From positions 186,001 to 250,000 of the forward strand of contig JAIVFI010000002.1 of the NCBI GenBank assembly GCA_025558095.1: a DNA stretch of 64,000 bases. The letters run 5' to 3'. Origin of the DNA: Hyaloraphidium curvatum SAG 235-1 (lineage: Eukaryota; Fungi; Monoblepharomycota). The notes beneath the pieces were generated by a model. The model saw only the letters and a list, made by a program, of their open reading frames with translations. It was not told the origin of the DNA and did no database searches. Position numbers and translations under genes: made by a program. Of the stretch, positions 18,471 to 55,439 are shown piece by piece (the stretch's first letter is position 1; each line of letters opens with the position of its first letter).

Positions 18471-19733
18471 ATGATCCGAACGGTCTGCGTCGTCGGCCTG
18501 GGCTACGTCGGCCTCCCCACCGCGGCGCTGCTCGCCCGCGCCGGACTGCGCGTGCGCGGCGCGGACGTCTCGGCACGCGCCGTGGACGCCGTCAACGCGG
18601 GCACGTCGCACCTCGTCGAGCCGGGGCTGGCCGACGCGGTTTCTGCGGCCGTGGCGTCGGGCATGCTCGCTGCGACGCTCGAGCCGGCGGCGGCGGACGC
18701 GTTCGTCATCGCGGTGCCGACGCCACTCGACGCGGAAAAGAGGTCGGACATGCGGTACGTCAGGGCCGCCGCAGAATCGGTCGCCCGCGTGCTGGCAAAG
18801 GGGAACCTCGTCGTGCTCGAGTCGACGTCGCCGGTGGGGTCCACGGAGGCCCTGGCGGGCTGGGTGGCCGCGGCAAGGCCGGACCTCGCGCCCGGGGACG
18901 TGCTTTTCGCGTACTGCCCCGAGCGAATCCTCCCCGGACGGGCCCTGGAGGAGCTGGTATCGAACGCAAGGATCATCGGAGGCCTCACCCCGGAGGCCGG
19001 CGAGGCCGCTTTGGTGCTTTATCGGACCTTTGTGGAGGGCGAGTGCGCCCTCGCGACCGCGCGGACCGCGGAGCTCGTCAAGCTCGCGGAAAACAGCTAC
19101 CGGGACGTCAACATTGCGTTTGCCAACGAGCTGTCGCTCGTGGCGGACAAGCTCGGCGTGGATCCGTGGGAGGCGATCCGGCTGGCCAACCTACACCCGC
19201 GGGTCGACATCCTCAGCCCCGGCCCTGGCGTGGGGGGCCATTGCCTGCCGGTGGACCCGTGGTTCCTGGTGGAGAGCTGCCCGGATGAGGCCAGGCTCAT
19301 CCGAACCGCGAGGGAGGTCAACGACGCCAAGACGGAATGGGTGTTCGAGCAGGTCCGCGAGGCGGTTTTGCAGGTGCTCTCCTCGGACCCTTCCAGGAGC
19401 ATGTCCGGTGTCTCTGTCGCCGTGTTGGGCCTCGCGTACAAGGCGGATACGGACGACCTGCGCGTCAGCCCCGCCGTCGAGGTTGCGCTGAAAACTGCTG
19501 GCCTGGGCTGCCTGGTTTTGGCCGTCGAGCCCAACCTCACCGAGCTGCCTGGCAAGCTGGCGGGCTCCATGCGGCTCTGCTCCCTGCCGGATGCCGCCGC
19601 CGCCGACGTGCTTTGCGTGCTCACCAAGCACAGCAGCTTTGCCGGCGCCGACGGCCGGGAGCTCGTCGCGAAACATCCGCGGGTGATTGATCCCGTCGGC
19701 CTTCTTCGCTATAGCAAGACTGTTCGAAATTGA
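18471..19733 (+). CDS. wecC: UDP-N-acetyl-D-mannosamine dehydrogenase, bacterial type, intronless
   Basis: GLGYVGLP, IAVPTP, LESTSPVGSTE, YCPERILPG, KLAENSYRDVNIAFANELS, HPRVDILSPGPGVGGHC..VDPWF, ARLIRTAREVND and GLAYKADTDDLRVSP. All follow enterobacterial WecC as I recall it. 420 aa. Confidence 0.95.
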   Translation: MIRTVCVVGLGYVGLPTAALLARAGLRVRGADVSARAVDAVNAGTSHLVEPGLADAVSAAVASGMLAATLEPAAADAFVIAVPTPLDAEKRSDMRYVRAAAESVARVLAKGNLVVLESTSPVGSTEALAGWVAAARPDLAPGDVLFAYCPERILPGRALEELVSNARIIGGLTPEAGEAALVLYRTFVEGECALATARTAELVKLAENSYRDVNIAFANELSLVADKLGVDPWEAIRLANLHPRVDILSPGPGVGGHCLPVDPWFLVESCPDEARLIRTAREVNDAKTEWVFEQVREAVLQVLSSDPSRSMSGVSVAVLGLAYKADTDDLRVSPAVEVALKTAGLGCLVLAVEPNLTELPGKLAGSMRLCSLPDAAAADVLCVLTKHSSFAGADGRELVAKHPRVIDPVGLLRYSKTVRN

Positions 19734-19783
19734 CAGTAGAAATCTGCGCGAGTCATTTACGTTGCGAACCGCCTCGTTATACA

Positions 19784-22783
19784 TTAGTTGCCCCGAATAG
19801 TAACGTTGGGCACAGAAAAGCCCGGTGCTTGAACTGTCCGGCCCGAGGACGTCGAGGTCGCATTCTGGGTCTTGGCAGGTGTGATAGTTCCGGACGGTGT
19901 GTTTTGCGAAAGGTGCTGCGTGCGGGGCCATGTTGCCGGCTCGCCGCTCGTCGCCTCGCATAGCTGGACGAGCTCGTCCGTTATCTCGGAAAATGGCGGA
20001 CGATCCAGCGGATCCTGAGCCCAGCACCGCTGGATGAGGTTCCACAAGGCTTCGAGCTCATCAGGGAGGTCCGTGGGTCGCGGAGGCCGCTGGCCAAGCC
20101 GCAGGCTCGCTTGAACGACTTCTCGATCGATTCCGGCAAACGCCTTCTGGCCGCCGCTGGCGATTTGGTAGCACACCATGGCAAAGGAAAACACATCCGC
20201 GGGTTTGTCGGCCCCACGGCGCGAGAGGACCTCGGGGGCAATGTATCCGGGCGTACCCGCAGTGCTTCCCCTTGAGTGGTCGGAGAACTTTTCCAACAGC
20301 CTCGCGAGGCCAAAGTCTGCGATCATGGCCCGGTCATCCACGAGTATGTTTGCCGGCTTGAGGTCGCGGTGAACAATGCCTTTGCCGTGGACCTCCTCCA
20401 TGCCCTCGGCGACCTCTCTGAGCCTCTTGAGACCCAGATCGATCCGCCACTCGACCGACCCCATGTACTTTTCGAGATCCCCGTGGCGGGCAATGTCCGA
20501 GACGAGCATCGGCGGGTCCACGCACACCCCAATGAGCTGCAATACACACCGGTGGCGGATGCCGTCCCACTGCCGCGCCTCGCGGAAGCACTCGGCCATG
20601 GCCTCCGCGGAAACCGGACCCAGGTTCAGCACCTTGACTGCCACGGGGCGCCGTCCACGCAGCATCCCCCGGTAGACGGAACCAAAACCGCCGCCCCCGA
20701 GGCGTTGGGAATAGTCGACAACGACCTCGGAGGCTTCCAGCAAAACGAGCTGGTTGATTTCCGCACCGGCGGGCGGATTCAGGTCGGGAGCCGGCGGTGT
20801 TCCTTTCGCGACAGCTCCGGTCGGCCACTCGGGTATCGCAACCAGCTCTCCTTGCTCGATCTTCTCGGGCTCCAGGTCCGTTGAACGAGCATTGTGCCTC
20901 CGGCACCGCCTCCAAGCCCAGAGAGCGCCCCCCGCTGCGAGCAGGCCGGCTGCAATGCAGCCAAGAATCAGGAAAGTCAGCGAGACTGGTCCGATTGCGT
21001 CCAACAAAGAGCTGCCGGATTGAGGTGTCGGCACCGCGAAGATTGTCGAGGTTGACGAAGCAGCCGCAAAGGAAGTACTATCCGGCCGGGAAAGTGCAGT
21101 CGAAGCAGTCAGTGTCAATGAGAGCGATCGTGCAAGCGTTGATGTCGCCGCCAGCAATGCGGAAGACGATAGCGTTCGCGAGCTCGTAGCTACGGACGAG
21201 CTCGCAGAGATGCTCGTAGATGATTGGAGGTTTGCCGGCAGAGGCTGCACCGGTTCGCCAAGCACATCGGCAGAGCCCGATGGAACAGGAAGCGACTCGG
21301 CCAAGGCTCGAGCGGGGATGTTCGGAGCCAGCAGGTCCTCGGGAATGTTCAATGCTCCCGTCTCGTTAGATCCGAATCCCCAGATCAGGCCGTCGGATGT
21401 GAGGGCCAGCACGTGGTTGGTTCCCGCCGCCACCTGCACGATGCCCGTCACCTGCGCATCGTCTGCCTTGAAGGGATGAGCACCCCAGAAGCGCAAGGTC
21501 CCGTTGGCAAGGTGGGCGATGGAGTAAGTGTCCCCACATACCACGTCATGCGTGACTCCGTCCAAGCCTCGAGGAATGTCCGTCTGTCCCACAGCATTGC
21601 TTCCCCAGGCCCTGACGCTCCCGTTGCGCAGCAAGGCAAGTGCGTGTCCGTTGCCGGCGCAGATCCGGCTGGCTGCGGCCCCGAAAAGGCGGCGGATGCC
21701 AGACACGACGACCGAGTCATTGCTGCTAGACCAAGCCACCACCTCTCCCGTGTCGAGGAGGGAGACGACAAAGTCTCTGCCCGAAGCGGTCTGGCGAACC
21801 CACTGTCGTGCGTATGCTGGTACGATTGGGAATGAGCCGGAAACGGGTAGCATCTTGGCATCCTCCTGCACGACAAAGACCGTGCCGGCCCCGACGTCGA
21901 TATGGCGGGACTTGGTCACGTTGAACCACGAAAGCCCTCCGGCACCCCACATGGCTACGTAGCCGCCCCAAAGCATCGCCGCGGCCACGTTGCCTCCCGC
22001 GGCAACCTGTGTCCCGTAAAATCCAGCCACACCGTCGGGCACCGTGCTCTGGCCGACGTTGTTCCGGCCCCACGCCTCGATGAGCCCGGTGGAACGGACC
22101 ACGAGCGAGAATCCGCGTCCGGCAGCAACCTGCCGCACGGGAAAGCTGCCCAAAACGATCCTCTCGACCTTGCAGACCCCTGCAGAAACGCCATGGTGAG
22201 GCCCATCTGTTCAACTGCGGTCCAAGCACCGGAACCTACCGCCCTCGCAGTAAGCCAGCGAACCCGTGCCCGTCTCGGGACACTTTCGGCCACAGGAGCC
22301 GCAGTTGTTGTAGTCCGTCTCGAGATCGAAGCAGCACCCCTCCGGGCTTTCCTTGGTGCCATCGCAGGTCTTCCCGCGGCAAACGACGTCCGTGCAGCCC
22401 GAGCATCGTGCGCGGCAGCACCAACCCCCCTCGCAGCAGTTCCATCCCTCCGGGTGAGCTTCTCCCGCCTCGCGGCAGTAGCTGTAGCCGGGCGGATAGC
22501 AGCGGCCATCCTCCATCATCGTCCCGCGGGCGCCGCACGAGTCCCCGACGGGCTCCTGCGCGAAAGCATGCCCGGGCACGTAGTATGCCACGGCGGGGGC
22601 AACCGAGCAGAGGAGCAGCGCCGCGACGAGTGCGGCCGTCGATGCACCGGCCCACCCTCGCCCCGGGCGCCCGACGGCCCCGGGTCCGTCCCGCCGTTCC
22701 GCTTTCGGTCGTCCGGAACGAGATTCGGCACAAGTTAGGCCTTTCTCGCCGCCTGGTTGGTTCACTATGTTCATGTTCGTCAT
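19784..22783 (-). CDS. Receptor-like TKL kinase: signal peptide, Cys-rich (Stig1-like) domain, RCC1/BLIP-II repeats, S/T stalk, TM, kinase
   Basis: CFDLETDYNNCGSCGRKC exon joined by GT-AG intron 22180-22239 to repeats of the QVAAGxxHxLAL..WGxNxxGQ type. TM LTFLILGCIAAGLLAAGGALWAW, then GGGGFGSV, VAVK, HRDLKPAN, DFG and APE. Start codon uncertain. Confidence 0.9.
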
Positions 22784-23484
22784 GGGCCGGGGCTGGTGCG
22801 CAGGGACACTTCGGCTTCGACGCGCACTGCCACTCGGTCGTGAGCAATGCCTCCGCCTCAAAGCCGTGCCGCCAATATGGTTTGGCTTTCGCAGTCATGG
22901 TCAGATGCGCCGATCAGACGAGAAATGAAAGAGTTACTCATGCTAGTGCCGGGGGATCGGCCCGTCTTGCTCCCGAACGCGCGGACCCTGGCCGGAAACT
23001 GATCAGAGCGACGTACATAAGCCATCAGGCTTTGTTGTCAAGCAGTGCCTTTCGCGCCGGATTACCGCCCTGCGTTGGCCTCCAGTTCAGCTTCGACCCA
23101 CTCCCTTGCCTTCCTTTCCATCCACCGCCTCACTCGGGATAGCGACAACGTCCAGGGCGGTTAGGAAGTCGGGCATCTCGTCAAAGGCTATGCGGCCCGA
23201 GAGGCGGCACCCATCCGCGATGAGCAGCTTCGCGGCGCGTAACGAGTAAGGCTCTCCAGCGCAGCGCCATCGCCGACGATCAGGAAGGCAAACTTGGACT
23301 CGCATCTTTGCCAGCTTGCCGGACACCTAGATCAGCAGCTCCAGCCCTCGTATGCCTGCGAAACCGGAGCGTTGGGCTGCGGCTTGCGGGCAGGCAGATG
23401 CGCGGTCCCTCCTTTATCCCTTCGATTGGCGCCCTACATAAGGACAAGGACACCCTCCCCAGCAGCCAGCGCCGCCCTTGCGAC

Positions 23485-24675
23485 ATGTGCGGGGGCGCCG
23501 TCCACTCTGCTGCAGACGCCCCGCGTGTCGCCGGGCAGGCGGACGCGGCGCCGGGCGCGCCCCGCGTGCTCGTCGTCATCGGCACGCGGCCCGAGGCAAT
23601 CAAGCTCGCGCCCGTTGTCGACGCCCTCCGCGCCTCGCCGCTCGCGGTCGACGTGGTCGCCAGCGGGCAGCACACGGACCTGCTCGACGCCGCGCTGGCG
23701 CCGTTCGGCATTTGCCCCGACCACCGCCTGGCGCTGCCCGCCGCGCGCGACCTCTCGGACCTCACCGCAGGCATCCTGCTCGGCATGCGGTCCATCCTCG
23801 CCGCGAGACCCTACGCCTTTGTCGTCGTACAGGGCGACACGACCACCGCGCTGGCCGCGGGCCTTGCCGCGTTCTATGCCCGGATCCCGCTCGCGCACGT
23901 CGAGGGTGGCCTGCGCACCTCCACGCCGCACTCCCCCTTCCCCGAGGAAGCAAACCGCCGCATGGTGTCGCGCATGGCGGCCCTGCACTTCGTCCCCACC
24001 GAGAGCGGCCGCGCAAACCTCCTGGCCGAGGGCACCGATCCCTCGACCGTGCACATCACGGGCAACACCGCCGTGGATGCCTTCTCGCGGACACTTCCCC
24101 TCGTGCGCTCCCTCTCCAGCCAGTACTCTTCCCGCTTTCCCTTCCTGGACCCGGCAAAGCGGCTCGTCCTCGTCACCGGCCACCGCCGCGAGAACCACGG
24201 CGCCGGCCTGGAGGGCATCTGCACCGCTGCGCTCGCCCTGGCTTCCCGGGGCGACGTGCAGGTCGCCTTCACCCTGCACCCGAACCCGCACGTCCGCGGG
24301 CCCGCCGCGGCGATGCTCGCCGGCGCCCCCGACGTCCACACCTTGGAACCGCAGGACTACCGCTCCTTCGTCTACCTGATGTCGCGCTCCTCGCTCATCC
24401 TCACGGACTCGGGCGGGATCCAGGAGGAAGCGCCGCTGCTCGGCATCCCCGTGCTGGTGCTCCGCGAGGAGACGGAGCGGCACGAGGCAGTCGAGGGCGG
24501 CACCGCGAGGGTGGTGGGCACGGACGCTGGGCGGATCGCGGCCGAGGCGGGGAGGCTGCTGGACGATGCGGAGGCGTACGCGGTGGCGGCGAGGGTGCAC
24601 AGCCCGTTCGGAGACGGCAGGGCGGCGGGGAGGATCGCCGAGGTGCTCTGCGGGTACCTTGCAAAGGCCGCCTGA
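23485..24675 (+). CDS. wecB: UDP-N-acetylglucosamine 2-epimerase (non-hydrolysing), bacterial type, intronless
   Basis: GTRPEAIKLAPV, GQH, VQGDTTT, HVEGGLRT, PFPEEANR, TGNTAVD, TGHRREN, HPNP, LTDSGGIQEEAP, VLREETER and PFGDGRA. Confidence 0.96.
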   Translation: MCGGAVHSAADAPRVAGQADAAPGAPRVLVVIGTRPEAIKLAPVVDALRASPLAVDVVASGQHTDLLDAALAPFGICPDHRLALPAARDLSDLTAGILLGMRSILAARPYAFVVVQGDTTTALAAGLAAFYARIPLAHVEGGLRTSTPHSPFPEEANRRMVSRMAALHFVPTESGRANLLAEGTDPSTVHITGNTAVDAFSRTLPLVRSLSSQYSSRFPFLDPAKRLVLVTGHRRENHGAGLEGICTAALALASRGDVQVAFTLHPNPHVRGPAAAMLAGAPDVHTLEPQDYRSFVYLMSRSSLILTDSGGIQEEAPLLGIPVLVLREETERHEAVEGGTARVVGTDAGRIAAEAGRLLDDAEAYAVAARVHSPFGDGRAAGRIAEVLCGYLAKAA

Positions 24676-43317: not shown

Positions 43318-43843
43318 TCAGCTACTGGCGCACGAGGCTGGCCCCCGGTCCTGCCTGAACCCCCCCGGTCCGTACATCTCCTTCACCTTCTCCACCAGCC
43401 TGCGCCTGTACGTCGGCAGCCAGGGATCCACGCCGTGCGTCTCGTTGTCCAGGCGCAAACCGCTCGGCGTGCCATCTGTGCCGGAAGCACAGGCCCCTCC
43501 TGACGACTCGTTCCAGTAGTGGGTCCGACATTCACGGGAGCACGACTGTGCGCGGCGGCAGCGCGGTCCGCGCCGGCAGCGCGGAGGCGGAGGCGGCGTC
43601 GACGAGGAGGTGCAGCACGTTCCAGCACGGCAGGAAGTTGACCAGCGACGCCAGCATCCTTGCCGCCAGGGGGAACGAGCGGCGGTCGACGACGGCGACG
43701 ACGGCGACGACGTCCATGTTGTGGAACGGGCAGGCCGGGGGCGGGCCGCGGCCCGGCGAGGGCAGCGCCAGCAGCAGCAGCGCGCCCGCGAGCAGCGCCA
43801 GCTGGGGCAACGGCCGCTCCGCCGCGGGGCACGCGCGCTTCAT
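43318..43843 (-). pseudogene. Internally deleted type II membrane protein, possibly glycosyltransferase-like
   Basis: Signal anchor plus the start of a GT-A-like beta/alpha unit (VVAVVDRRSFPLAARMLASLVNFLPCWNVLHLLVD) stops at 43532. An out-of-frame coding-like C-terminus (THYWNESS..PWLPTYRRRLVEKVKEMYG..*) follows immediately. Confidence 0.5.
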
Positions 43844-43945
43844 GGTGCCGCGGGGGCAGGGCGGGCAGGGCTCAAGGCGGTTAGGGATTAGGGATCGTTG
43901 GGGATAGTACCGCAAACACACCTGCCTGGAAAGGGTTAGGTGAAA
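43844..43945. promoter_or_regulatory. Short bidirectional promoter with tandem AGGGAT
   Basis: 102-bp spacer between divergent ATGs that contains TAGGGATTAGGGATC at 43882-43896. Confidence 0.45.
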
Positions 43946-45160
43946 ATGGTGGGCGTCCGTCACCTCGCCGCGGGCGCCGTCGGCGCCGCCCTCGTCCTCG
44001 GCGCGGCGCTGCGGAGCGGCGCCCCGGGCCGCGGCGCCCGGCTGCCGGCGGCGGCGGGCCCCCGCGCGGACTTTGTGCCCGGGGCCGGCCGCCGCGCCCA
44101 CGCCGCGCTGTGCCTCGCGGTGAAGGACCAGCCGGCAGACGTCCTGGAGTGGGTGGCGTGGCACCACCATCTGGCGCGCGTGGACCGCTTGTACGTGGTC
44201 GAGAACGTGAACGACTGGCCGCCGGAGCGGCACGCTGCCCCCCCAACGCGCACGGAGCGCCTCCTCGCCGGCTACATCGGCGCCGGCGTCGTCGAGCACC
44301 TCCCGTTCGTGTTCTCCGAGGCCACGCGCGGCCGCTACCCGCACCACCAGGCCTTTGCCTACTCGGCGTGCTTCGACCTCTTCGGCCTGCGGCACGAGTG
44401 GATCGTCGCCATCGACGCCGACGAGTTCGTCGAGTACCCCGGGATCGGCAACGGCACCTCGCTCTCCGACATCCTCCGGGCGCACGAGCGGCCCGGGGTC
44501 GGCGAGCTCCTCCTCAACTGGCGCATGTTCGGCAACCCCAACGGCACCGTGCGGACCCGGCCCCTCGCGGGCACCGTGGCCACCTACACGGGGTGCATGC
44601 CCGCGTCCTACGGCGACAACCGCCACCACAAGACCGCCGCGCGCCCGCGCGCGCTGCGGGCTCTGAACATACACGCGGGAGAGCTCCGCGAGGGCTGGCG
44701 GGCCGTGGACGAGCGCGGGGTCGCGCTGCCCGTGACCGACCTGCGCAACGGGACGGCCACCGTCGCGAGGGTGTGGGTGAACCACTACGTCAGCAGGAGC
44801 GCGGAGGAGAACGCGGAGAAGACCGCCAGGGGCTCGGGGGATCTGAACACAAAGACGGCCAAGTTCTTCAAGCTCATGGACCGCGATGCGACCGAAACGT
44901 GCGCATCGGCACGGGATGCTTGGTTGGCCAGCGGGGTGTGGGACGGGGCGGCCGAGTGGGCCGAGGGGATCGGGAACGGAGGTGTGGCCCCGAGAAGCGG
45001 CCCCGGACCAGCGATGCGCGGGCTTCAAAAGATGAGCGGAGAGGCTCGCAACGACGATCCGCCAGGGGCAGTCTCTCTCCTCGGTCTCGATGGCAGCTGC
45101 AGGCGTGGCGAGGCCGCAGTTCTCGCTGCCGCGGACAGTTCATCGAGCTCTTCCGCATGA
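43946..45160 (+). CDS. Glycosyltransferase, GT92/DUF23 (GT2-related) family, intronless type II membrane protein
   Basis: LCLAVKDQPADVLEWVAWHH, DRLYVVEN, QAFAYSAC, WIVAIDADEFV, LNWRMFG, HHKT and VNHYVSRSAEE. Confidence 0.87.
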   Translation: MVGVRHLAAGAVGAALVLGAALRSGAPGRGARLPAAAGPRADFVPGAGRRAHAALCLAVKDQPADVLEWVAWHHHLARVDRLYVVENVNDWPPERHAAPPTRTERLLAGYIGAGVVEHLPFVFSEATRGRYPHHQAFAYSACFDLFGLRHEWIVAIDADEFVEYPGIGNGTSLSDILRAHERPGVGELLLNWRMFGNPNGTVRTRPLAGTVATYTGCMPASYGDNRHHKTAARPRALRALNIHAGELREGWRAVDERGVALPVTDLRNGTATVARVWVNHYVSRSAEENAEKTARGSGDLNTKTAKFFKLMDRDATETCASARDAWLASGVWDGAAEWAEGIGNGGVAPRSGPGPAMRGLQKMSGEARNDDPPGAVSLLGLDGSCRRGEAAVLAAADSSSSSSA

Positions 45161-45838
45161 GTCCAGGCGCACGCATGGATGCAAGCTGGTGCCGCCAATC
45201 GATCAACGATAGCCGCAACAGGTTCCGGTGCGGGCTTCGTTCTTTCAGAGCCCACAGAGGCGCCGCATGATACCGGGATCACCCGCCTGCCCTGCGGGAG
45301 GGCCAGATGCTCCGAAGCCGCCTCAGGGAGCCAGCGTGGCTCCGTGCCCGGTACCGGCTTCCTCAGCACTGGTGAACAGGCCGGCGGGCAGTTCCGAATG
45401 CGAGAGGGATGCAGGGAAAGGCGAAGGGTGGTGTCGTCATTTTCCGGGTCCGTCACCGCCCCGACGCACAGCTACTGCCGCCGCCGCAGAGAAGCCCCGC
45501 CAGACGCACGCAACGGGACCTTGACTGTGCCTGGAAGCCCTCGAGATCCACGCGGGTGGGGCCCGGTCGGGTGCGGGCGGTGGTGGTTCCGATCTCCTTT
45601 GCGGTGGCTTCCGGGGGTGGCGGCTCGCTCCGAGCCCGTTGCACGGAAAGCCCTCGAATCCCTCCCCGAAGGCATCCGGCGATACTAATGAAACCATATT
45701 CGATTCCGAGGTGCCCTGCCATGCGAGAAGTCGGGGGCCGGGACGACCGGGGGGTTCAGCCTCCGCCTCGTCTTGGGATCCAAAAAGCGGAGACCGATTC
45801 CCACTCCTTTCCCCTCCCGCCCCACCCGCTCATCACCA

Positions 45839-46694
45839 ATGGCGGCCCCGTCCTTCCTGTCCGCCGCGGCGCGGCCGCAGCCCGACGCGTGGCACGGCGG
45901 GCCCGCGTCCGCCGGCGCCGGTGCGGAGGCCGCAGGCGCTTCGCCGCACCGCGGCTTCCCCGCCCGCGCAGCACTCCCCGTCGCCTTCCCCTCCCCTCCC
46001 CGCGCACCGATGCCGGCCGCCGACTGCGCGCCCGCGCTGCCGCTGTCGTTCTTCCTTCCTTCCGCGGGCGGCCCGCCGCCGGTGCCGGGCCACTGCTACT
46101 GGACGTCGCCCGCCTTCCTGGAAACCGTCGCGCCGCACCTCGCCCGCGCCCCGCTGCCCTTCCCCCTGCCCGGCTTCCCGGCGCAGGTGCGCCGCAACTC
46201 CTCCTCGTCGGGCTCCGAAACCCTCGTCGCCGGCGTCCCCGAGCACCCTTCGGAGCGCTTCGACTCGGACGCCGACGGCGACTTTGAGCTGGACGACCCC
46301 GCGGACTTTGCCGGGCTCGCCGGGGCGACGCAATCTCCGGACCCCGAGGGAAGCACCGCCATCGGCGACGAACCCAGCGGCTCCTCTTCGTCCGACGAGG
46401 CGGAGGGAAAGACCGACGCCTGCCGCGAATGCGGCCGCGCCTTCAAATCCACCGGGCACCTCAACAGGTCGGCCCGGCATCGCCCCCCCATATCCAACGC
46501 AGCTGACGTCCGTCCCGCCCCCCCGTCGCAGGCACAAGCGCTCGCACCTCCCCGAGTCCCTGCGCCCGCACGCGTGCTCCTTCGGGTGCGGGCGGCGGTT
46601 CGCGCGGACCGACAACCTCCGCATGCACGAGGCGACGCACCGCCAGGGCGGACATAGGAGGAAGAGGACGCGGCGGGCGAGGGTGGACGACTGA
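45839..46694 (+). CDS. Two-finger C2H2 zinc-finger transcription factor (Nrg1-like recognition helices)
   Basis: CRECGRAFKSTGHLNR|HKRSH across intron 46468-46531, then CSFGCGRRFARTDNLRMHEATH. Confidence 0.9.
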
Positions 46695-47012
46695 GCCCGG
46701 TTTGCGGGCGCGACGCGGGCTTATCCGGTGTGTCGGCTCGAGGATGGAGGTCCCGCCCCCAGTCTTTATCGAACACACGCCACGTATTTCTTGGTCATCT
46801 CACTATGCTGCCTACGCACCCTCTTCTCCTACGCCATTGTCGTTGCCGTTATGTCCGTGGCGCTGTGCAGCGAAGGCGCGGAAGCCCACATCCCGTCCTC
46901 GTCCCCGGTCGTCCCCTGGTAGTCCAGCTGGGCCTTTCCATGTGTCCCTTTTGCGAATTGGCATCCGAAGTTGCGGCCTTTCGACGGCGGCAACGGCCCG
47001 TCGCCCCCAGGA

Positions 47013-47324
47013 TCAGAGCTTCGGCGCCCCCGCCATCCCCTCCCACGCCTCCCCCCCCTCCGACTCCCAGCCATCCTCCCCCTCCAGCCCTTCCGCGTAC
47101 GCCGCATGGCACGTCCCGCAGACCTCGGAGCCCCTCTTCCCGTGCGCGCACTCGGGCGCCTCCCCGCCGCGGTACGCCTCGGGGAACACGGCGGCGAACA
47201 GCGTCCTGCGCACGTCGGCGCCGTTGACCACGGGCGGGGGGACGTGCCGCGCCGCGAGGGCGGCAAAGTCCGGCGGGGCGGGGAACGGCGGGGACGGAGC
47301 GGCGGCGGGGGGCCGCGGGGCCAT
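47013..47324 (-). CDS. Small hypothetical protein with a CxH..CxxC motif
   Basis: ATG ORF of about 103 aa containing CAHGKRGSEVCGTCH and an acidic tail. Confidence 0.4.
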   Translation of the reverse strand: MAPRPPAAAPSPPFPAPPDFAALAARHVPPPVVNGADVRRTLFAAVFPEAYRGGEAPECAHGKRGSEVCGTCHAAYAEGLEGEDGWESEGGEAWEGMAGAPKL

Positions 47325-47900
47325 GCCGGGGAAAAGGAGTGTGGGGGAAGCGGGAAGGTGTGCTGCAGGCAGGAGGCGGGGGCGTGCGTGTGTGGTCCCA
47401 AGGCGCGCGAAAGAAACGGGGAAACGGGGGGCGGGGTTCGGTGGCGGACGATGGCGGAATCCCGCCGTGGTGTCGTGCACAGCGATCGGGGCGGAGGGAT
47501 CGGCGAATCGGCCGGCGGCGGTGGTTTCCGGGACGCGCGCCGCGGCGCCGGCCGGCAGGGCCCGCGGAGTCTAGCGAAAAATGTGCTGGAGGGCGAGGGA
47601 GCGAAGGAGCAGGTTTCCGGCGGCCGGGAGCAGGTGTCGGCGCGGCGCGCCGCACCGAGCGGTTCCCGTCGTACTTTCGGACAGCCCGATTGGTTGGGGA
47701 CCCCACTCGCGGGTCAAGTCGGGCTCTCCCGCGCATCCTGCGATGCCGCTATGTGGCCGGAGGACATTCGCGGACGTGGATGCGCGTCGCGGCGGGTGCC
47801 GGGTCCGATGAAAGTCCAGGATGGGCACAGGCGGCGGAAAGGGTGGTTCGGGGATCGGGCGAGGTTCAAGCGCACCGACCCGGCGTGCACGCGCGGCCAC

Positions 47901-48751
47901 CTATATGCACCCGCAAGGTCGCCATTTGACATCATTGCTCCGTCCCTTTCCGGGGGCCCGAGGCCGGTGGGGCGGTGCGGTGCGGGGGGGCGGAAGTGTT
48001 CCGCAAAAGGACGACGCGGACCGATCGGTCCATGCTGCCATTCGGATCCATGATGCCGATCCGCGCCAGATTGGGATGCGGGCGACGCGGAAAGAGGGGA
48101 GGGAGATTTCGGTGAGGGCGATGCGGCCCATGTCGCGCTTGGTGCGTGCGGCGGGGGGCATGAATTCCTGCTGCGTCGCGAGGAGGCGGAGGGTGCGGTC
48201 CGGCGGCGGGGACAGCGCGATGGGCCGGGGGTCCTCGAGGCCCTGAATGTCGCGTTGCCCGGATCGGGGCGCAGCGACTTCGGCACGCGGAGTTCGACGA
48301 CGGGCACGGCGGGGTCGATGCCCAGGTCTGCGTCCAGCCGCGCGAGGGTGGTCCGCGAGACGAAGCGGTCCTTGTAGATGTAGCGCGACGAGGCCACGTC
48401 GATGCGGTAGCTGACGTGCCGCGTGAGCACCCACAGCGCGCCGTCGGAGCCGCGGAGCAGGGTCGGCGTCGACGGGGCGAAGGTCACCTCGCCGCCGGCA
48501 AAGGCCGCGTGGCCGTCGGGGAACAGCCGCCGCGCGCGGACCATCAGCGGGCGCAGAGCGGGGGCGTGGCGCCAGTCCGAGGGCAGCGCCAGCACGCCGG
48601 CGGCGAAGGAGGCGTTGTCCGCCGCGACAAAGGGCGGCGGCCTGCGCGCGCACGCGGGGGACGGCGCCGCCACCCGGCCGAGCGCAAGCAGCGCGACGAG
48701 GAGCGGCAGGAGCACAAGTGCGACGGGGCGCCGGAGTCCCGCAAAGCCCAT
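47901..48751 (-). pseudogene. Frameshifted and truncated type II membrane beta-propeller glycoenzyme (GH130/GT91-like fold)
   Basis: Signal anchor, PSTPTL..LTRHVSY, and GLEDPR appearing in a new frame after a 1-nt loss near 48243. Protein-like sequence fades after about 48070. Confidence 0.55.
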
Positions 48752-48856
48752 TCGGCGCCGTCTGGGACCGTCCCCGATTGGGGGGGCCCGGCGGGGCAAT
48801 CCCTTGCTTGGCGGCGGATACTCCTAGGGGCCCGCAGCACAATTCGGACCCGCGGG
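48752..48856. promoter_or_regulatory. Short bidirectional promoter containing CAAGGGATTGC (minus strand)
   Basis: 105-bp spacer between divergent ATGs with GCAATCCCTTG at 48796-48806. Confidence 0.45.
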
Positions 48857-50893
48857 ATGCGCGGCCTGCGGTGGCTCTGCTCGCGCGGCCTGCCGCTCGG
48901 CGGACTCGTGGTGATCGCGGCCGGCCTCGCTCGGCGGGGCGGCGGGCCGGCGGGGGCGGCGTCGGCCGCGGGGCGGGCATTCGTCACCGCCGCGTGCGGG
49001 GATGCCCCGCCGGACGCCGTCGCCGCGCTGGTCGAGTCCCTCCGACCGTGCGGACTGCTGGTGGTCGTCATCGCCGACCGTGCGGACGCCGCCAACGTGT
49101 CGCGTGCGTGTCCGGACTGCAGCGTCGCGGCGGGGGACGGCGTGGACGAGAGGCGGGGCTGCGTCGATGCGTTCGCCCGAGCGTGGGCGCTACCCTTTTC
49201 CGAAGTCGCATACTTTGCACCGAATGCGCTGGCGGTGAAGGTGACGGGGCCCGACGGAGCCTGCGGCCTGCTGGGCGACGCAGCCCTCGCCCGCCTGCCC
49301 GTCAATGCTGTGCTCGCCGCGGGCGGGCCGCTGGACGGCGATGCGCCGGACCCGTCGGTCGTGGTGCTGCGGCCACACGTCCGGACTGCTGCGGCCATCA
49401 AGGAATGGGCGGACGCAACCCCGCACGCGTCCCCCGCCGAGCTGCTCGCCGCCTTCTTCTCCCCCGGCGACCAATCGCCTAACAGCCAGTCGCCGAAGCC
49501 TGGCAAATGGTTCCGCCTGCCCCGAACGTCCAACGTGCAGACATCGATGGCCCGCCTGCCCGGCTATCCCGCGCTGGCGGACCGCGCGGCAGTGCTCGTC
49601 TTCGACGGCCCCGCACGGCCATGGGACTTCTTCCGGACCGCCTCCCCGCGCTGGCGCGACTCGTTCGACCCCGCAGCCTGGTGGGCGTGGCAGCGGGCCG
49701 CCAACGCCGCCCGCGCGAGGGCCGGGCTCCTCGGGGACGGCCAGGCGGCGCGCTGGGCTGGCAGGCAGGCGAGCTGCAACGCGCTATTCGGGCAGACCGG
49801 CGGCGCCGACCCCGGCAACGGTGCAGCAGCCACAATGGGGCTCCTTCCGTGGCCGGTCTCCCGTACCCTGCTCCCCCCGCCTCCCGGCTCACGCGGCGGC
49901 AAGCTCGCCGTGCTCCTCGCCACCTTTGATCGCGCCCTGGACACGGTCGCCCTCCTCCTGCGGCACTACGCTGCCAGCCCCGCCGTCTCGGCCGTCTACC
50001 TCCTCTGGCTGAACCCATCCACCGCCGGCCGCATCGCCGCCCTCCCCCCCGGCTGGCCGCATCGCACCCCCACACCTCCCCCCGGCATGGCCCCCATTAC
50101 CGTCGTCCCCGCCCCCCGGGACTCCCTCAACGCGCGCTTCCACCCCCTCCCCTCCCTCCCCTCCTCCTCCATCCTCGTCGCCGACGACGACATGCTCCCC
50201 TCCCACGCGGCCCTGGACCTCCTCCGCCGCGTGCACCTCCTCGACCCGGACCGCCCGGCGTCGTTCCACGCGCGGGGCCACGCGAGGGGCCACGACGGGT
50301 ACCCGAAGTACCTTGCCGGGGCGCACGAGATGCGCGGGTACTCGCTCGCCCTGACCAAGCTCATGGCCGCCCCCGCGGACCTGCTCTTTGCCTACTCGTG
50401 CATGCTCCCCGACGCCGTGCACGCCTTGGTGGACCGCGAGGCGAACTGCGAGGACGTCGCGGCGGGGTTCCTCGCATCGGGCACCTCGGGCAAGCCGCCC
50501 CTCCTGGCGTGGCCGAGGGACGTGGCGGTGCGGTGCGCGCCGCTCGCGCCCGGGGAGGACCCGGGCACGCCGGAGGGGAAGAAGGCCTACTTCGACGCCG
50601 GCTACCTGGACGGGGGCTACTTCTTCCGCGGCGCCGACGGGCCCGCGACGAGGCTGGGGTGCAGGGCCGAGGCGGCGGTGCACGATTTCGGGAGCAGGGG
50701 AGGAGGGCTGTCGTCCAAGCCGGGTCACTTTGCCGCGCGGGCGAGGTGCCTGGCGGAGCTGGAGGGGGTGTTTGGCGACGCGCTGGTCACCGCACGGGAG
50801 ACAGTGGGAGAGTTCAGGGGGCTGCCACCCGTCGGAGGCGGGGGAATGGAGGACCTGGCCGAGGCGAGGGAGCTCGTGCGCGGGCCCGGCTGA
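48857..50893 (+). CDS. Degenerate GT8 (glycogenin-like) domain fused to a GT64 (EXTL-type) glycosyltransferase, intronless
   Basis: GT8-like: AFVTA, AWALPFSEVAYF, PSVVVLRP, WFRLPRTSN and VFDGPARPW. GT64: LATFDR, DSLNARFHP, ILVADDDM, YSLALTK, NCEDV and GLSSKPGHFAARARCL. Confidence 0.88.
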   Translation: MRGLRWLCSRGLPLGGLVVIAAGLARRGGGPAGAASAAGRAFVTAACGDAPPDAVAALVESLRPCGLLVVVIADRADAANVSRACPDCSVAAGDGVDERRGCVDAFARAWALPFSEVAYFAPNALAVKVTGPDGACGLLGDAALARLPVNAVLAAGGPLDGDAPDPSVVVLRPHVRTAAAIKEWADATPHASPAELLAAFFSPGDQSPNSQSPKPGKWFRLPRTSNVQTSMARLPGYPALADRAAVLVFDGPARPWDFFRTASPRWRDSFDPAAWWAWQRAANAARARAGLLGDGQAARWAGRQASCNALFGQTGGADPGNGAAATMGLLPWPVSRTLLPPPPGSRGGKLAVLLATFDRALDTVALLLRHYAASPAVSAVYLLWLNPSTAGRIAALPPGWPHRTPTPPPGMAPITVVPAPRDSLNARFHPLPSLPSSSILVADDDMLPSHAALDLLRRVHLLDPDRPASFHARGHARGHDGYPKYLAGAHEMRGYSLALTKLMAAPADLLFAYSCMLPDAVHALVDREANCEDVAAGFLASGTSGKPPLLAWPRDVAVRCAPLAPGEDPGTPEGKKAYFDAGYLDGGYFFRGADGPATRLGCRAEAAVHDFGSRGGGLSSKPGHFAARARCLAELEGVFGDALVTARETVGEFRGLPPVGGGGMEDLAEARELVRGPG

Positions 50894-50962
50894 TCGGAGC
50901 ACATTCACCGGAGCAGCGTACCCGATCGGCGGGAAGCCTCCATTGTACCACACGCCACGACG

Positions 50963-52858
50963 CTACTGCACCAGCAGCCCGCTCGCCCCCATCTTGCCCA
51001 CACCCCCCGCCAGCATCGGCCCCCCCGCCCAGTCCCCCGCGACCCCCTTGCCCGTCCGCAGCACGTTCCCAAACACCCCCTCCAGCTCCGCCAGGCATCC
51101 CTCCCTGACCTCCATGTGGCTCTTCTTCCCTGACACCCCTTTCGGCCCGCCGTGGTCCTCGATCGCGGGGCGCGGGCCGCACCGCAATTCGGTGCCGTCC
51201 GGGGCGCGCATGAGCACGGGGAGGTAGCTGTCCCCCTCGTCGCGGGTCATCGGCCCCGCATGCGCGGGCGCGCACCGCCACGCACCGGGCGGATCGGGCG
51301 GCCACACGGCGAGCGGGGCGCGGCCCGCCGCGCCCGAGAGCAGGAAGTTGGCGGCCAGGTCCTCGCAGTTCTTTGCCCGCTCCGCCACGGCGCGCGCGGG
51401 AAAGGGGAGCGCGCACGAGTGGAGGAAGAGGAGGTCCGAGGGCGCCGCCATGGCCTTTGTGAGCACCATCGAGTAGCCCTCCCCGAGATCGGCCCGCGTC
51501 CACTTGTACGACCACCCGCCCTCCTTCCCGCGCACGGCATGGCGGGGGTAGTACCCCGCCAGCCTGTCTCCATCCGCGCGCCAAGCGCGGAGCAGCGCGC
51601 TCACTGCCCCGTGGGAGAGGAGCATGTCGTCGTCGAGCACGAGGATGCCGCGGGGAAGTGAGGGCAGGGGGAGGAAGCGGTCGTTGAACGAGTCCCTCGA
51701 CGGGGGGACCACGTGCACGGATGCCTGCTTTCGGCCGTTGCGGGGGTGGAGGTGGAACGGCCAATGGGGGGGTAGCGACCGTGCGGCGTCCTGCGTGCGG
51801 TTGTCCAGCCACAGGAGGTAAACGGATTCGGCGTCGGGGTGCAGGGCGTAATGCCGCACGAGGAGCGCGACTTCCTCCAGGGGGCGGGAGAAGGTGCTGA
51901 TGAGGAAGGCGGCGCGGGCTTCGGCGTCGTCCGAGTCGGGGGAGGGGGGCACGAAGGAGGCGGGAAACGGCCAGCTCGGCGGGTCGGTGCCCGCCGAGGG
52001 GGTTGGGAGGCCGAAGAGCGCGTCGCACCGCGGCCGCACGGCGTCCCAATCCGCCGCTTCCTCGCGAGAGACCAGGCCCGCGGCCAGCCGCGAGGCGTGC
52101 AGGGTGCGCCGCCAGAGCCACCACGCAGCGGGGTCGAACGACTCCCGCCAGCGCAGCTTTTCCCGGCGCGGCCCGGCGCGGAAGAAGTCCCAGGGCCGGG
52201 AGGGCCCGTCAAAGTGCAGCACCGCCGCGCGGGGGGCGAGAGATTTGTAGGCGGGCAGGCGGGCCAGGGACGCGCGCACGTGGAAGCGCTGCGGCAGGCG
52301 GAGCCAGGTGCCCGGCGCCGACGCGTTGCCCGCGGCAAAGTACCCGGCCAGGAGGTCCGCGAAAGGGGCCGAGGGGGTTTCCGCTGCCCGCCGCACCAGC
52401 GCGTCGCGGACTGCCGGATCGGGGCGCAAAACAAGCACGCCGGGGTCGATCGCATCGCCGTCGCCCGGCAGCGAGGTCGCGAAAAGCGCGTTCCGCGGGG
52501 CATTATTGCCAAAATCCAACAGCTCGCAGGCGGCGGGCCGTGCCAACGCGCCGGCGGGAAGCAGCGCGACGGAGCGGTGTGCGAGCCCCCACGCGTCCAG
52601 CGCCGCGCGCCCGCAGTCCGCGCCCCCTTCCGGCCGCAGCATGACGAGCGGGGCATTACACGAGCGCAGGGAGTGTTGCAGCGCCGCCAGCGGGTCGTCG
52701 TCGCCCGGCCCGCAACGCACCGCCGCGAACGCGGAACGGCCTGCTGGAGCGCCCCGCGGCGACCCGGACGCGTCGGGACTCGCCAGCCGCAGCGCCCAGA
52801 ACGCGCAGAAAAAAAGGACCAGTGCGGACGCGGCCAAGCGCGACCGCGTGCCCGCCAT
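50963..52858 (-). CDS. Paralogous degenerate-GT8 + GT64 fusion glycosyltransferase, intronless
   Basis: PGVLVLRP, WLRLPQRF, LHFDGPSRPW, ISTFSR, DSFNDRFLP, LVLDDDM, YSMVLTK, NCEDL and GVSGKKSHMEVREGCL. Confidence 0.88.
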   Translation of the reverse strand: MAGTRSRLAASALVLFFCAFWALRLASPDASGSPRGAPAGRSAFAAVRCGPGDDDPLAALQHSLRSCNAPLVMLRPEGGADCGRAALDAWGLAHRSVALLPAGALARPAACELLDFGNNAPRNALFATSLPGDGDAIDPGVLVLRPDPAVRDALVRRAAETPSAPFADLLAGYFAAGNASAPGTWLRLPQRFHVRASLARLPAYKSLAPRAAVLHFDGPSRPWDFFRAGPRREKLRWRESFDPAAWWLWRRTLHASRLAAGLVSREEAADWDAVRPRCDALFGLPTPSAGTDPPSWPFPASFVPPSPDSDDAEARAAFLISTFSRPLEEVALLVRHYALHPDAESVYLLWLDNRTQDAARSLPPHWPFHLHPRNGRKQASVHVVPPSRDSFNDRFLPLPSLPRGILVLDDDMLLSHGAVSALLRAWRADGDRLAGYYPRHAVRGKEGGWSYKWTRADLGEGYSMVLTKAMAAPSDLLFLHSCALPFPARAVAERAKNCEDLAANFLLSGAAGRAPLAVWPPDPPGAWRCAPAHAGPMTRDEGDSYLPVLMRAPDGTELRCGPRPAIEDHGGPKGVSGKKSHMEVREGCLAELEGVFGNVLRTGKGVAGDWAGGPMLAGGVGKMGASGLLVQ

Positions 52859-52951
52859 CCGCGCAGGAGCGGGACTACGGTTCGCCCAGCCCGCCCAGAG
52901 TGCCAAGGGATCAAGATTCGTCGCCGATCAGCAGCCTCGCGTACAGCGAAT

Positions 52952-54247
52952 CTACGCGATGCCGGCGCCCGCTGCCTTCTTCCCGCGACCATCAGCCCGG
53001 GACCGGGCGCGATCGGTCCACACGCGCGACCCGGGCTGCCGATCCCGCTCGACCACGGTCCCGGACACCGCTGCCGGCGCAGGAACGAGCTCTCCGCCGC
53101 CGAGCCGGGGGACAAAGCTGCACGCGGGGAGCGCGTCCGCTCCCGAAGCGCGCCGAGACCAGGTCCATGCCTTGCATCGGGGCCAGTCCGACGCGCACGC
53201 TGCGGCGCACGCGTCCGGCGAGGCCTCGGGGCCCAGGTAGTCCGGCACAGAGGCCGCGCGCCTGACGGCGGCTTCGTATGCCACTCCGTCCGTCCTCCCT
53301 CCCTGCACGACCTCCGTCCCCGCCTCGGCACCGCGCCGGTATCCGCCGAGCGAGAAGGCGAACCAGTCCCTCTCGACGCCGTTCAGCGTCGTCCTCACCG
53401 CGGCCGACATCGCGACCGTGTGGTTCAGGGTCGACCCCGGGTATGGATCCGTGGCCACCAGCGCCGGCCAGAGCGCATGGCACCGTCCCGGGAACGCCTT
53501 GAGCACGGCCTCGAACCCGCCGACGTCCAGGGGCTCCCTGCCCGCCGCCATCCCCGCGGAGGCGGCTGCCGCGGCGCCGCGGCGGAAGCCGACGGCGTGG
53601 GCGCCGAACACGCGGGCGGGCTGCACGAGGCCGCGCTCGGCGGCGAGGGTGGCGTTGATTCCCGGGTCGTGCATCAGCGTCGCGCCGAGCCAGATGGCCT
53701 GCCAGTCCGCGGGCACGCGGCGCACGGAGGCGTCGAAGGCGCGGGGAAAGTCGGCGTGGAGCACCGCGTCGTCCTCCAATATGAGCACGCTCGGCCCGTC
53801 CGGGGTCGAGACAGTGGCGTTCCCCACGGCGCCGAGCAGCCATCTCATGGAAGCCCACAGCGCCCACACGCCCGGCGTCCGTTCCTTTTCCGCGGCCATC
53901 TCGCCGCAGCGTTCCCGCGCCTCCGGATCGGTGAGGCCGTCGCGGGCGGCGATCACCGCGTGCGGGGCCCCCAAGGCGGAAAGCTGCGCCGAGACGGCGA
54001 GCGCCCGCCGGGACAGCCGATCAAGTCCGATCACGAGGACCAGATCGAAGACGTGCCCCAAAGTGCAGACTTCTGGCGGCCGAGGGCATCCTGCCGCGGC
54101 GGGATGGGGGACGGCGCGGAGAAGGGACGGCACGCGGTCCAGAGGCACGAATCCCGGCTGCATGGTGCCGCCCCGCGACGACAGCAGGTCCGCAACAAAC
54201 AGGACGGCCGCGACGAGGACCGCGGCGCGCCGGAAGCCGCGGCGCAT
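52952..54247 (-). CDS. GT25-family glycosyltransferase with a C-terminal PAN/apple domain, intronless
   Basis: FDLVLVIGLDRLSRR, AARDG, ALWASM, VLILEDDA, PADWQAIWLG and GAHAVG. C-terminus SPDACAAAC..RCKAWTW..CSF..VSG. Confidence 0.82.
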   Translation of the reverse strand: MRRGFRRAAVLVAAVLFVADLLSSRGGTMQPGFVPLDRVPSLLRAVPHPAAAGCPRPPEVCTLGHVFDLVLVIGLDRLSRRALAVSAQLSALGAPHAVIAARDGLTDPEARERCGEMAAEKERTPGVWALWASMRWLLGAVGNATVSTPDGPSVLILEDDAVLHADFPRAFDASVRRVPADWQAIWLGATLMHDPGINATLAAERGLVQPARVFGAHAVGFRRGAAAAASAGMAAGREPLDVGGFEAVLKAFPGRCHALWPALVATDPYPGSTLNHTVAMSAAVRTTLNGVERDWFAFSLGGYRRGAEAGTEVVQGGRTDGVAYEAAVRRAASVPDYLGPEASPDACAAACASDWPRCKAWTWSRRASGADALPACSFVPRLGGGELVPAPAAVSGTVVERDRQPGSRVWTDRARSRADGRGKKAAGAGIA

Positions 54248-54302
54248 GCCGGCATCCAGGGGATTTCAAGGGATTGCGGGACGGCCGACGCGTCGAATTA
54301 GG
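54248..54302. promoter_or_regulatory. Very short bidirectional promoter containing CAAGGGATTGC
   Basis: 55-bp spacer between the divergent GT25 and GT34 ATGs with the motif at 54267-54277. Confidence 0.45.
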
Positions 54303-55352
54303 ATGGGCGTCCCATTGCCGCGGCCCGGGGTGCGCCTCGTGGCGCCGGTTGTGCTGGTGGCGCTGCTCGCGTACCGGCGGTGGGACGATTGGGAGCCGCC
54401 CGCCGCGCCGCCGCGGAACCCACGCGTCGCAATCGTCACGGCCTTTGTCGGAACGGCGTTGGCGCCGCTGGCCGCAGTCTCGCGCCCGTTCAAGGAGCGC
54501 CACGCGGCCCGCAACGACTACTCGCTGTTTGACGCGGCGTCGCCGTCCTTCGCCTCCGAGTTCGGCCCCGACGCGTCCGCCTTCGAGCCGCCCCCTCCCT
54601 CGGCCGCCTCGACGATGGAAGGGCTGGACGCCATCTACGCAGCCCGCCGGCGCATTAAATTGCGTTCCCTGCGCGCCGTCCTGGCCTCGGGCCGGTTCGA
54701 CTGGGTCGCCTGGACCGACGCCGACCACGCCTTCCTCAAACCCTCCTTCTCCTTTTCCGCCGCCGGGCTGCTCGACCCCCGCTGGGACCTCGTCCTCCCC
54801 TCCGCCTCGCACCATTCCGCAAAATGGCACGGCATCCCCAACCTCGGCTTCACCCTCCTCCGCCGCGACCCTTGGACCCTCTCCCTCCTCGACGCCCTCC
54901 TCGACATGTCCTCCCGCCCGTGCAACCGCACCGCGCTCGCCGGCACCCGCGCCAACGGCTGGCTCGAACTGTGCACGCAAGAGGGGAGGTACTGGCTCGG
55001 CGACCAGGGCCTGCTAATGGCGTACCTCGCGCTGCACCCCGGGGAAGCGTGCCGCGCGAGGAGGATACCCATCCGCGCGGCGGGGGGGCTGTGGCCCTGC
55101 GTGAAGCCCGGGGATCCGGCCGTGCATTTCGCGGGGGCAAAGGATCCGGGGAAGGCGGTGCGGATGCTGCACGCGCTCGATGCGCACGCGCGGAGGGATC
55201 CGGAGGGGGGTGTGCCGGGTGGGGGGGCGGGGGAGATGGGGGAGGCCAAGGCAGCGTGGGAAAAGGGGGAGTGCGAGGGGGCGGAGGACACTTCCGAGGT
55301 GCGGGCGAGGATGGAGGCGGATTGGCCGCCGTGCGACGGACGGAGACGATAG
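54303..55352 (+). CDS. GT34-family (GMA12/MNN10-like) glycosyltransferase, intronless
   Basis: RVAIVT, KERHAARNDY, IKL, FDWVAWTDADH, NLGFTLLRRDPW, GDQG and PGDPAVHFAG. N-terminal signal anchor. Confidence 0.85.
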   Translation: MGVPLPRPGVRLVAPVVLVALLAYRRWDDWEPPAAPPRNPRVAIVTAFVGTALAPLAAVSRPFKERHAARNDYSLFDAASPSFASEFGPDASAFEPPPPSAASTMEGLDAIYAARRRIKLRSLRAVLASGRFDWVAWTDADHAFLKPSFSFSAAGLLDPRWDLVLPSASHHSAKWHGIPNLGFTLLRRDPWTLSLLDALLDMSSRPCNRTALAGTRANGWLELCTQEGRYWLGDQGLLMAYLALHPGEACRARRIPIRAAGGLWPCVKPGDPAVHFAGAKDPGKAVRMLHALDAHARRDPEGGVPGGGAGEMGEAKAAWEKGECEGAEDTSEVRARMEADWPPCDGRRR

Positions 55353-55439
55353 TGTGTCACAATAAGCGGGCCGGGCAACCCGCTTCTTTTGGCCGGCCCG
55401 ATCTTCCACGGCCGAGCAATCGCCGTCATGCCCGCTTGC

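Follow-up and report, generated by a model that had tools for sequence, protein, structure and literature searches.

The window, i.e. the whole 64,000-nt stretch analysed here, represents C2:186001-250000 of the genome assembly of the early-diverging freshwater fungus Hyaloraphidium curvatum (31.9 Mb, 55 contigs), in which C2 is a contig of 1,315,085 bp. It contains two intact, intronless open reading frames (ORFs) on the plus strand that encode homologs of the bacterial enzymes WecC and WecB (Table 1). WecB converts UDP-N-acetylglucosamine (UDP-GlcNAc) to UDP-N-acetylmannosamine (UDP-ManNAc), and WecC oxidises the latter at C6 with two NAD+, yielding UDP-N-acetylmannosaminuronic acid (UDP-ManNAcA). 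The wecC stop codon and the wecB start codon are separated by 3,751 bp. A first-pass annotation had reported both ORFs and a spacing of about 3.7 kb, and it was accurate in these points. It had also described the genes as interleaved with intron-bearing eukaryotic genes. One such gene, a receptor-like kinase gene with one intron, is indeed present, but it is the only host gene between the two. The spacer also contains a decayed gene of a bacterial-type GT4 glycosyltransferase that had escaped notice, and the supposed gene pair is in fact a three-gene module.

Table 1. Genes of the wecC-wecB locus, intact GT4 copies, a second eukaryotic locus, and a neighbouring cluster. Positions refer to the window unless a contig is named.
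Feature	Location	Strand	Characteristics and evidence
wecC, UDP-N-acetyl-D-mannosamine dehydrogenase	18471..19733	+	420 aa, intronless; NF008286, residues, RNA-like contigs
wecB, non-hydrolysing UDP-GlcNAc 2-epimerase	23485..24675	+	396 aa, intronless, 26-aa N-terminal extension; TIGR00236
Decayed bacterial-type GT4 glycosyltransferase gene	23025..23365	-	C-terminal part only; protein-level matches
Receptor-like kinase (host)	19784..22783	-	Signal/Cys-rich exon, RCC1 repeats, membrane segment, kinase; Pfam RCC1_2, PK_Tyr_Ser-Thr
GT4a, KAI9033209.1	C2:598585-600258 (locus L112)		Intact, intronless, 557 aa, putatively membrane-anchored
GT4b	C34:200260-202014 (L206/L208)		Intact, putatively anchored paralogue, 78% aa identity to GT4a
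L215	15.5-kb contig 65967, Logan run SRR35566558		wecC, wecB, putatively anchored 561-aa GT4, GT2-type gene, PF13524 transferase, sulfotransferase-like gene
Golgi-type cluster	43500-55400		Two GT64 (one with weak GT8 match), GT92/GT2-like, several unassigned anchored ORFs; all intronless

The WecC protein scored 523 bits with NF008286, the equivalog model of UDP-ManNAc dehydrogenases (cut-off 459). The score with the TviB model was 122 bits (cut-off 592), and the values for the UGDH models were far under their cut-offs (with no separate test for WbpA). Nine residues have been listed as specific to UDP-ManNAc dehydrogenases, a set that sorts these enzymes from glucose and mannose dehydrogenases and was not designed against UDP-GlcNAc dehydrogenases (PMC4794789). 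All nine are kept in the window protein (E117, R152, P155, R211, H242, V254, H257, V261, F265), as are K204, E207, R244, and C258. The residue numbers agree with those of Staphylococcus aureus Cap5O at every diagnostic position, and a Cap5O R152/R211 double mutant is inactive (PMC4794789). The best matches of WecC are 55-59% identical, and those with names are bacterial.

The WecB protein scored 383 bits with TIGR00236 (cut-off 210), compared to 72 bits with the model of the hydrolysing NeuC (cut-off 236). The alignment with E. coli WecB (1f6d) has an E value of 5e-105, with the catalytic motifs kept, and it contains equivalents of the E. coli active-site residues R10, K15, D95, E117, E131, H213, S290, and E296. 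The mechanically called ORF opens at a TTG at 23308; the NCBI protein is the 396-aa form from the ATG at 23485. The family cut-offs and the diagnostic residues support the chemistry predicted by the first-pass annotation, and UDP-ManNAcA is very likely the product of the two predicted enzymes.

The GT4 relic lies on the strand opposite to wecB, 120 bp upstream of its ATG. It contains an in-frame stop codon, frameshifts, and an internal deletion, the motifs are collinear across three frames, and the original C-terminus and stop codon are kept at about 23025-23027. The match has an E value of 5e-5 genome-wide and of 9e-7 in the window (38% identity over 89 aa), while the next unrelated match has an E value of 0.85. 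The DNA-level score is 159, in comparison to 149 in GC-rich controls; because this difference is marginal, the identification rests on the protein-level evidence. Two intact copies, GT4a and GT4b, exist elsewhere in the genome. GT4a abuts, tail to tail, a wecC duplicate that is frameshifted and comprises the 3' half of the gene (C2:600805-600186; together C2:598585-600805); it is 86% identical at the nucleotide level to window positions 19082-19711. In this duplicate, the match to window position 23035 gives way, within 7 bp, to the match to position 19711, indicating that GT4a lost its own stop codon and runs about 24 codons into antisense wecC. The layout of the duplicate and the relic in the window indicate an ancestral fungal locus with the order wecC> <GT4 wecB>, of which the copies decayed reciprocally. 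In the segmental duplicate, at a distance of about 395 kb, GT4 survived and wecC was lost; in the window locus, wecC and wecB survived and GT4 was lost. The kinase gene is found in the window locus and not in the duplicate; it may have been inserted here or deleted there.

Two sequencing runs bear on the residence of the genes in the fungal genome. The kinase intron (22180-22239, 60 nt, GT-AG, frame kept) is spliced out in RNA-like contigs of run X1; these contigs are unstranded, and their assignment to RNA is conjectural, with the removed intron as its support. A contig of 3,469 nt leads from 22779 down to 19274, lacks the intron, and reaches into wecC for 460 nt. Another contig represents wecC from 18678 to 19299 (depth 114), so that the X1 contigs together span 18678-19733, and a contig of 4,569 nt begins in wecB at 23634 (depth 130; its first 616 nt were compared with the window). 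The depth is 114-302 across the genes versus about 2 in the spacers; X1 leaves the 5' ends of wecC and wecB uncovered and the region 22.8-23.6 kb unbridged. Transcription of both genes, for which the first-pass annotation had proposed a check, is supported by these unstranded data. In run X2, which stems from another study, short DNA-like fragments have an equal depth of 4-5 on wecC, kinase, and wecB.

The base composition of the two genes is host-like, with GC1/GC2 values of 0.72/0.50 and 0.74/0.54, compared to 0.60-0.67/0.39-0.45 for bacterial wecC. The closest database proteins to WecC and WecB are at most 59-60% identical, with the exception of one partial representative (62% over 253 aa). 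A protein encoded on C2 bears the name Hyaloraphidium curvatum at 100% identity. The host genome contains chitin synthase genes split by introns as well as a paralogue of the kinase (44%, contig C26). An assembly chimera or a bacterial contamination, about which the first-pass annotation had cautioned, could be proposed because neither a single contig of the runs nor a long read covers the whole stretch, with the gap at 22.8-23.6 kb and thus the 5' junction of wecB unbridged. However, wecC is physically continuous with the host, both on the 1.3-Mb contig and in the RNA-like contig that links its 3' third to the spliced kinase, which together with the host-like base use makes contamination unlikely. 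The equal DNA depth in the second study, the host-like codon use, the decayed duplicates and the paralogue elsewhere in the genome, the lack of any bacterial match above 60%, and an intron-bearing orthologue in another eukaryote (see below) also oppose it. We rejected this explanation as extremely improbable on the read, codon, and paralogue evidence and regard it as practically certain that wecC and wecB reside in the fungal genome. Mobile-element ends, repeats, and bacterial promoters around the module were not found above chance.

For comparison, we surveyed 80 genome loci. In 67 of the 69 bacterial loci that have both genes, wecB precedes wecC, which shows that the fungal order is derived, as the first-pass annotation had proposed. 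A circular permutation combined with an inversion of GT4 would yield the fungal order. An inversion-free origin from loci with divergent GT4 and wecB genes (L142, L158) was considered and dropped, as their GT4s belong to another clade. The closest bacterial GT4 relatives are 44-49% identical and are modules of multi-GT4 proteins of 1.35-1.77k aa that have no membrane anchor. The eukaryotic GT4s nest among these bacterial modules with a support of 100/100. The closest relatives mostly come after wecB-wecC in operons of capsule type, and multi-GT4 genes directly follow wecB-wecC in four loci (L118, L121, L122, L125). For wecC, the loci L118, L122/L123, and L125 group in a clade of 13 members (100/98), in which the WecC relatives with the highest scores are also found. 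The order wecB-wecC-GT4 is annotated as a compact unit on plasmid p1 of Paracoccus albus and is also found in an E. coli capsule cluster of the ABC-export type (pCE1537-B). Altogether, the GT4 subfamily lies beside wecC in 16 of the 41 bacterial loci with enough flanking sequence.

Forcing WecC into the clade of the capsule operons improved lnL by 10.1 and 15.2 over the free search. The same bacterial sister clade is favoured for WecC and GT4, and it is not rejected for WecB. The nesting of GT4 within bacteria, the separation of WecB from other eukaryotic epimerases (see below), and the bacterial names among the best WecC matches agree with the bacterial origin claimed by the first-pass annotation, and we consider this origin of wecC and wecB almost certain. 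The claim that the genes arrived together has become much more likely through GT4, but the trees of wecB and wecC, taken by themselves, are no proof of a common donor. A single transfer of a wecB-wecC-GT4 operon is likely in our view. Alternatively, the genes could have come from different bacterial donors and could have been gathered later by selection for clustering. In the free trees, WecC and WecB lie on long branches without a resolved position; the placement of WecC moves between trees, and WecB is found near alphaproteobacterial sequences or without a resolved place, which speaks for separate transfers. Nevertheless, a same-donor grouping was never rejected, GT4 independently points to wecB-wecC operons, and all three genes have the same eukaryotic sister, making separate transfers improbable. 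The naming of a bacterial donor was dropped, as the topologies varied between trees and the window proteins have long branches and a biased composition.

This eukaryotic sister is a contig (L215) reached via the 50%-cluster representative P0373. Its wecB gene contains an intron (116 nt, GT-AG, frame kept) and its spacers are AT-rich, indicating that L215 is eukaryotic. The identities to the H. curvatum proteins are 50% for WecC, 47% for WecB, and 44% for GT4a, and the L215 WecC has the same group-specific residues and the catalytic K204 and C258. In mixture-model trees, the L215 genes are sisters of the H. curvatum genes, with supports of 99/99 for GT4, 98/91 for WecC, and 97/86 for WecB. The spliced models of the kinase and of L215 wecB were treated exon by exon in searches and trees, and L215 WecB is represented in the trees by exon 2 only. 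The genes are therefore not unique to this fungus; the orthologous, clustered trio of L215 shows that the module is old and conserved and no one-off insertion. The PF13524 gene of L215 has a 60% match on H. curvatum contig C21, and other PF13524 genes are present in the H. curvatum genome. The sulfotransferase-like gene of L215 is fragmented, and its likeness is based on a motif, without a Pfam match.

The presence of the trio in a second eukaryote might also be explained by ancient vertical genes that were lost nearly everywhere, or by delivery through a giant virus. In line with vertical descent, which the first-pass annotation had considered, WecB-type epimerases occur in Capsaspora (KJE92143.1) and Boothiomyces (KAJ3308216.1). 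Two more WecB-type genes of H. curvatum itself (C2:523064-525325 and 554854-557232) encode membrane-anchored epimerase-transferase fusions. All these epimerases are only 40-45% identical to the window WecB. However, a single clade of the window WecB with the other eukaryotic epimerases was rejected (p-AU 0.012), arguing for a separate origin, and GT4 is nested inside a bacterial clade. In the flanks examined, no WecC partner was seen beside the other eukaryotic WecB-type epimerases. In viral contigs, relatives of GT4 and WecB were not found and the WecC matches were weaker (at most 51%); this is a weak negative, as the scans used few peptide patterns. Vertical or viral origin is thus very improbable. 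Since epimerases of the WecB type are present in further eukaryotes and in two additional genes of H. curvatum, the unusual parts of the module are WecC and GT4.

We propose that a fragment of a proteobacterial capsule-type operon, wecB-wecC-GT4, entered a eukaryote long ago and persists in at least two eukaryotes, one of them H. curvatum. WecB and WecC have no targeting segment apart from the Rossmann-type start strand and are therefore probably cytosolic. UDP-GlcNAc, from which chitin is made, would be epimerised by WecB, and the resulting UDP-ManNAc would be oxidised by WecC to UDP-ManNAcA. One of the several nucleotide-sugar transporters encoded in the genome may carry UDP-ManNAcA into the secretory pathway, where GT4 would build an acidic glycan with ManNAcA as donor sugar or acceptor. 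An N-terminal hydrophobic segment is present in three of three eukaryotic GT4s and in none of five bacterial relatives (KD15 values of 1.6-2.8 versus 0.3-1.0). This N-terminus resembles that of Golgi type II transferases; it may be a membrane anchor or a cleaved signal. The eukaryotic GT4 may be one module cut from a multi-module bacterial enzyme that gained an anchor. Whether GT4 acts with ManNAcA in the secretory pathway is, in our estimate, evenly balanced, and the same chance is given to the idea that WecB, WecC, and anchored GT4 form a conserved eukaryotic module, shared by H. curvatum with one or more other eukaryotes, that installs ManNAcA on secretory-pathway glycans. The reading as a whole, an old operon transfer that was reused for ManNAcA on secretory-pathway glycans, is favoured moderately.

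Several observations weigh against this reading. Both eukaryotic branches are long in the WecB and WecC trees, and together with the composition bias, long-branch attraction may inflate the sister support of these two proteins; no long branches were flagged in the GT4 tree. The GT4 relic (38% at the amino acid level) is more eroded than the wecC relic (86% at the nucleotide level), and a single duplication alone is insufficient for this difference; a later gene conversion of wecC could be the cause. The grouping of WecB with the operon partners of the other genes gave p-AU values of 0.10, 0.75, and 0.15, i.e. it was neither rejected nor consistently preferred (better by 15.4 lnL in one row set, worse in the two with 0.10 and 0.15). 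For the closest GT4 clade, wecC was a neighbour in 6 of 11 loci versus 10 of 30 for other GT4 relatives, and as this difference was not significant (p 0.29), a proposed enrichment was dropped. WecG/TagA (PF03808) had no match in the H. curvatum genome, with a positive control in 7 of 14 genomes, and a single query, which had no positive control, did not detect the other modules of the bacterial polymerase there. A bacterial-type alternating polymer is thus not reconstructable from these genes alone, and decoration of host glycans is likelier than a bacterial-type capsule.

UDP-ManNAcA could also be made but used by host-type Golgi transferases, with GT4 moving another sugar or having drifted to a different function. 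A candidate is the intronless GT64/GT8/GT92-like cluster 19-30 kb away, at 43-55 kb of the window. The GT4 gene adjoining wecB is decayed, and the specificity of GT4 is unreadable from its sequence, since its relatives in the PDB are distant. On the other hand, the trio is clustered in the second eukaryote at about 45-50% identity, and the GT4 subfamily accompanies wecC in the above-mentioned 16 of 41 bacterial loci. We regard this alternative as unlikely, yet not negligible.

A further alternative assigns separate ends to the two enzymes: WecB would feed ManNAc to a NeuB/NeuA cluster, and the dehydrogenase would make UDP-GlcNAcA from UDP-GlcNAc. At a distance of about 135 kb, the region C2:339-348 kb holds a cluster of genes for NeuB, a nucleotide-sugar transporter, and a CMP-synthetase. 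The design of the diagnostic residue set also leaves room for a UDP-GlcNAc dehydrogenase. However, WecC exceeds the WecC equivalog cut-off and fails that of TviB by a wide margin, the genes are linked in two eukaryotes, and a non-hydrolysing WecB yields UDP-ManNAc and not the free ManNAc that NeuB needs. Separate ends are decidedly improbable. Both the NeuB/NeuA cluster and the GT64/GT92-like cluster are alternative sinks. Amino-uronic acid polymers of black yeasts would speak for separate ends, but our literature search did not confirm their occurrence. For a eukaryotic ManNAcA pathway, no paper was found in the searched literature, which leaves out most subscription journals.

The window proteins resemble WecB and WecC of E. 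coli, which serve the enterobacterial common antigen, and Cap5P and Cap5O of S. aureus, in that the families are recognised above curated cut-offs and catalytic and specificity residues are kept. Unlike these systems, the fungal genes form no operon, have a changed order, lack a detectable WecG/TagA, and have a GT4 partner. The same three families are found in proteobacterial capsule and exopolysaccharide loci (P. albus p1, E. coli pCE1537-B, Rhodoferax, Alcaligenes, and the marine metagenome L118-L128), where the GT4 relatives (44-49%) often directly follow wecC. In contrast to these loci, the eukaryotic GT4 is a single module with an N-terminal hydrophobic segment instead of a part of a large anchorless protein, and export genes were not observed in the vicinity of the fungal copies. 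The epimerases of Capsaspora and Boothiomyces and the two H. curvatum fusions share the Pfam and TIGR family with the window WecB, but they have a separate origin, and several are membrane-anchored fusions. In early-diverging fungi, bacterial xenologs have been described as intron-poor, subject to post-transfer duplication and domain gain or loss, and commoner in ancestrally aquatic groups (PMC11291939). The window genes fit this description, as they are intron-poor, duplicated, and show a domain change; in contrast to the cases described, H. curvatum contains a multi-gene pathway. The text of that study mentions neither Hyaloraphidium nor epimerases or operons, and no epimerase or UDP-sugar dehydrogenase family is listed in the part of its supplements available to us (PMC11291939).

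Within their known families, the enzymes are unremarkable, and transfer from bacteria to fungi is well documented (PMC11291939); the distinctive feature is the apparent redeployment of a bacterial capsule-sugar unit as a eukaryotic glycosylation module. If true, a sugar of bacterial and archaeal surfaces would join the eukaryotic glycan repertoire, and a cytosolic capsule unit would have been rewired to the secretory pathway, with the sugar enzymes staying soluble and one transferase module being anchored. The single-module 557-aa GT4 is a tractable handle on what this uncharacterised bacterial GT4 subfamily transfers. For a culturable fungus, the reading makes a concrete chemical prediction, i.e. 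UDP-ManNAcA and ManNAcA in glycans.

Further genes of related types were noted. The H. curvatum genome encodes, at C12:403070-405210 (L006:1306-3444), a fusion of a divergent nucleotide-sugar dehydrogenase with an NAD-dependent epimerase/dehydratase, which is under the WecC cut-off. Natural WecB-WecC and WecC-WecB fusions of 825-881 aa exist in metagenomic sequences (P0399, P0446, P0513, P0403). Among the Boothiomyces-type WecB relatives P0264, P0263, and P0249, two are anchored and two are fused to a GT2-like domain; the contig of P0249 also bears genes for eRF1 and a nucleotide-sugar transporter. The two H. curvatum fusions at C2:523 and 555 kb are inverted copies (98.8% identical) that combine the WecB-type epimerase with a DUF6492-like domain. 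They lie in an island of lower GC content (about 50-55%) with nucleotide-sugar transporters and transposon-like ORFs, and an NCBI model of the fusion (482 aa) does not extend over the full open frame.

The region C2:505000-611000 is repeat-rich and contains many intronless, membrane-anchored genes of glycan type. Transposase-like ORFs are close to GT4a and the wecC relic, and a GT2-like Golgi-type gene is close to GT4b on C34. One of the glycan-type genes, for an FkbM-like methyltransferase at C2:580361-581368, has a weak similarity (31%) to a gene located upstream of the wecB of the bacterial locus L098. The cluster at C2:339000-348000 (L109) also includes Golgi-type transferases and appears to represent a pathway of the sialic-acid or Kdn type. 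Lastly, the kinase, with its Cys-rich first exon and RCC1 repeats, has an architecture that is unusual among fungi.

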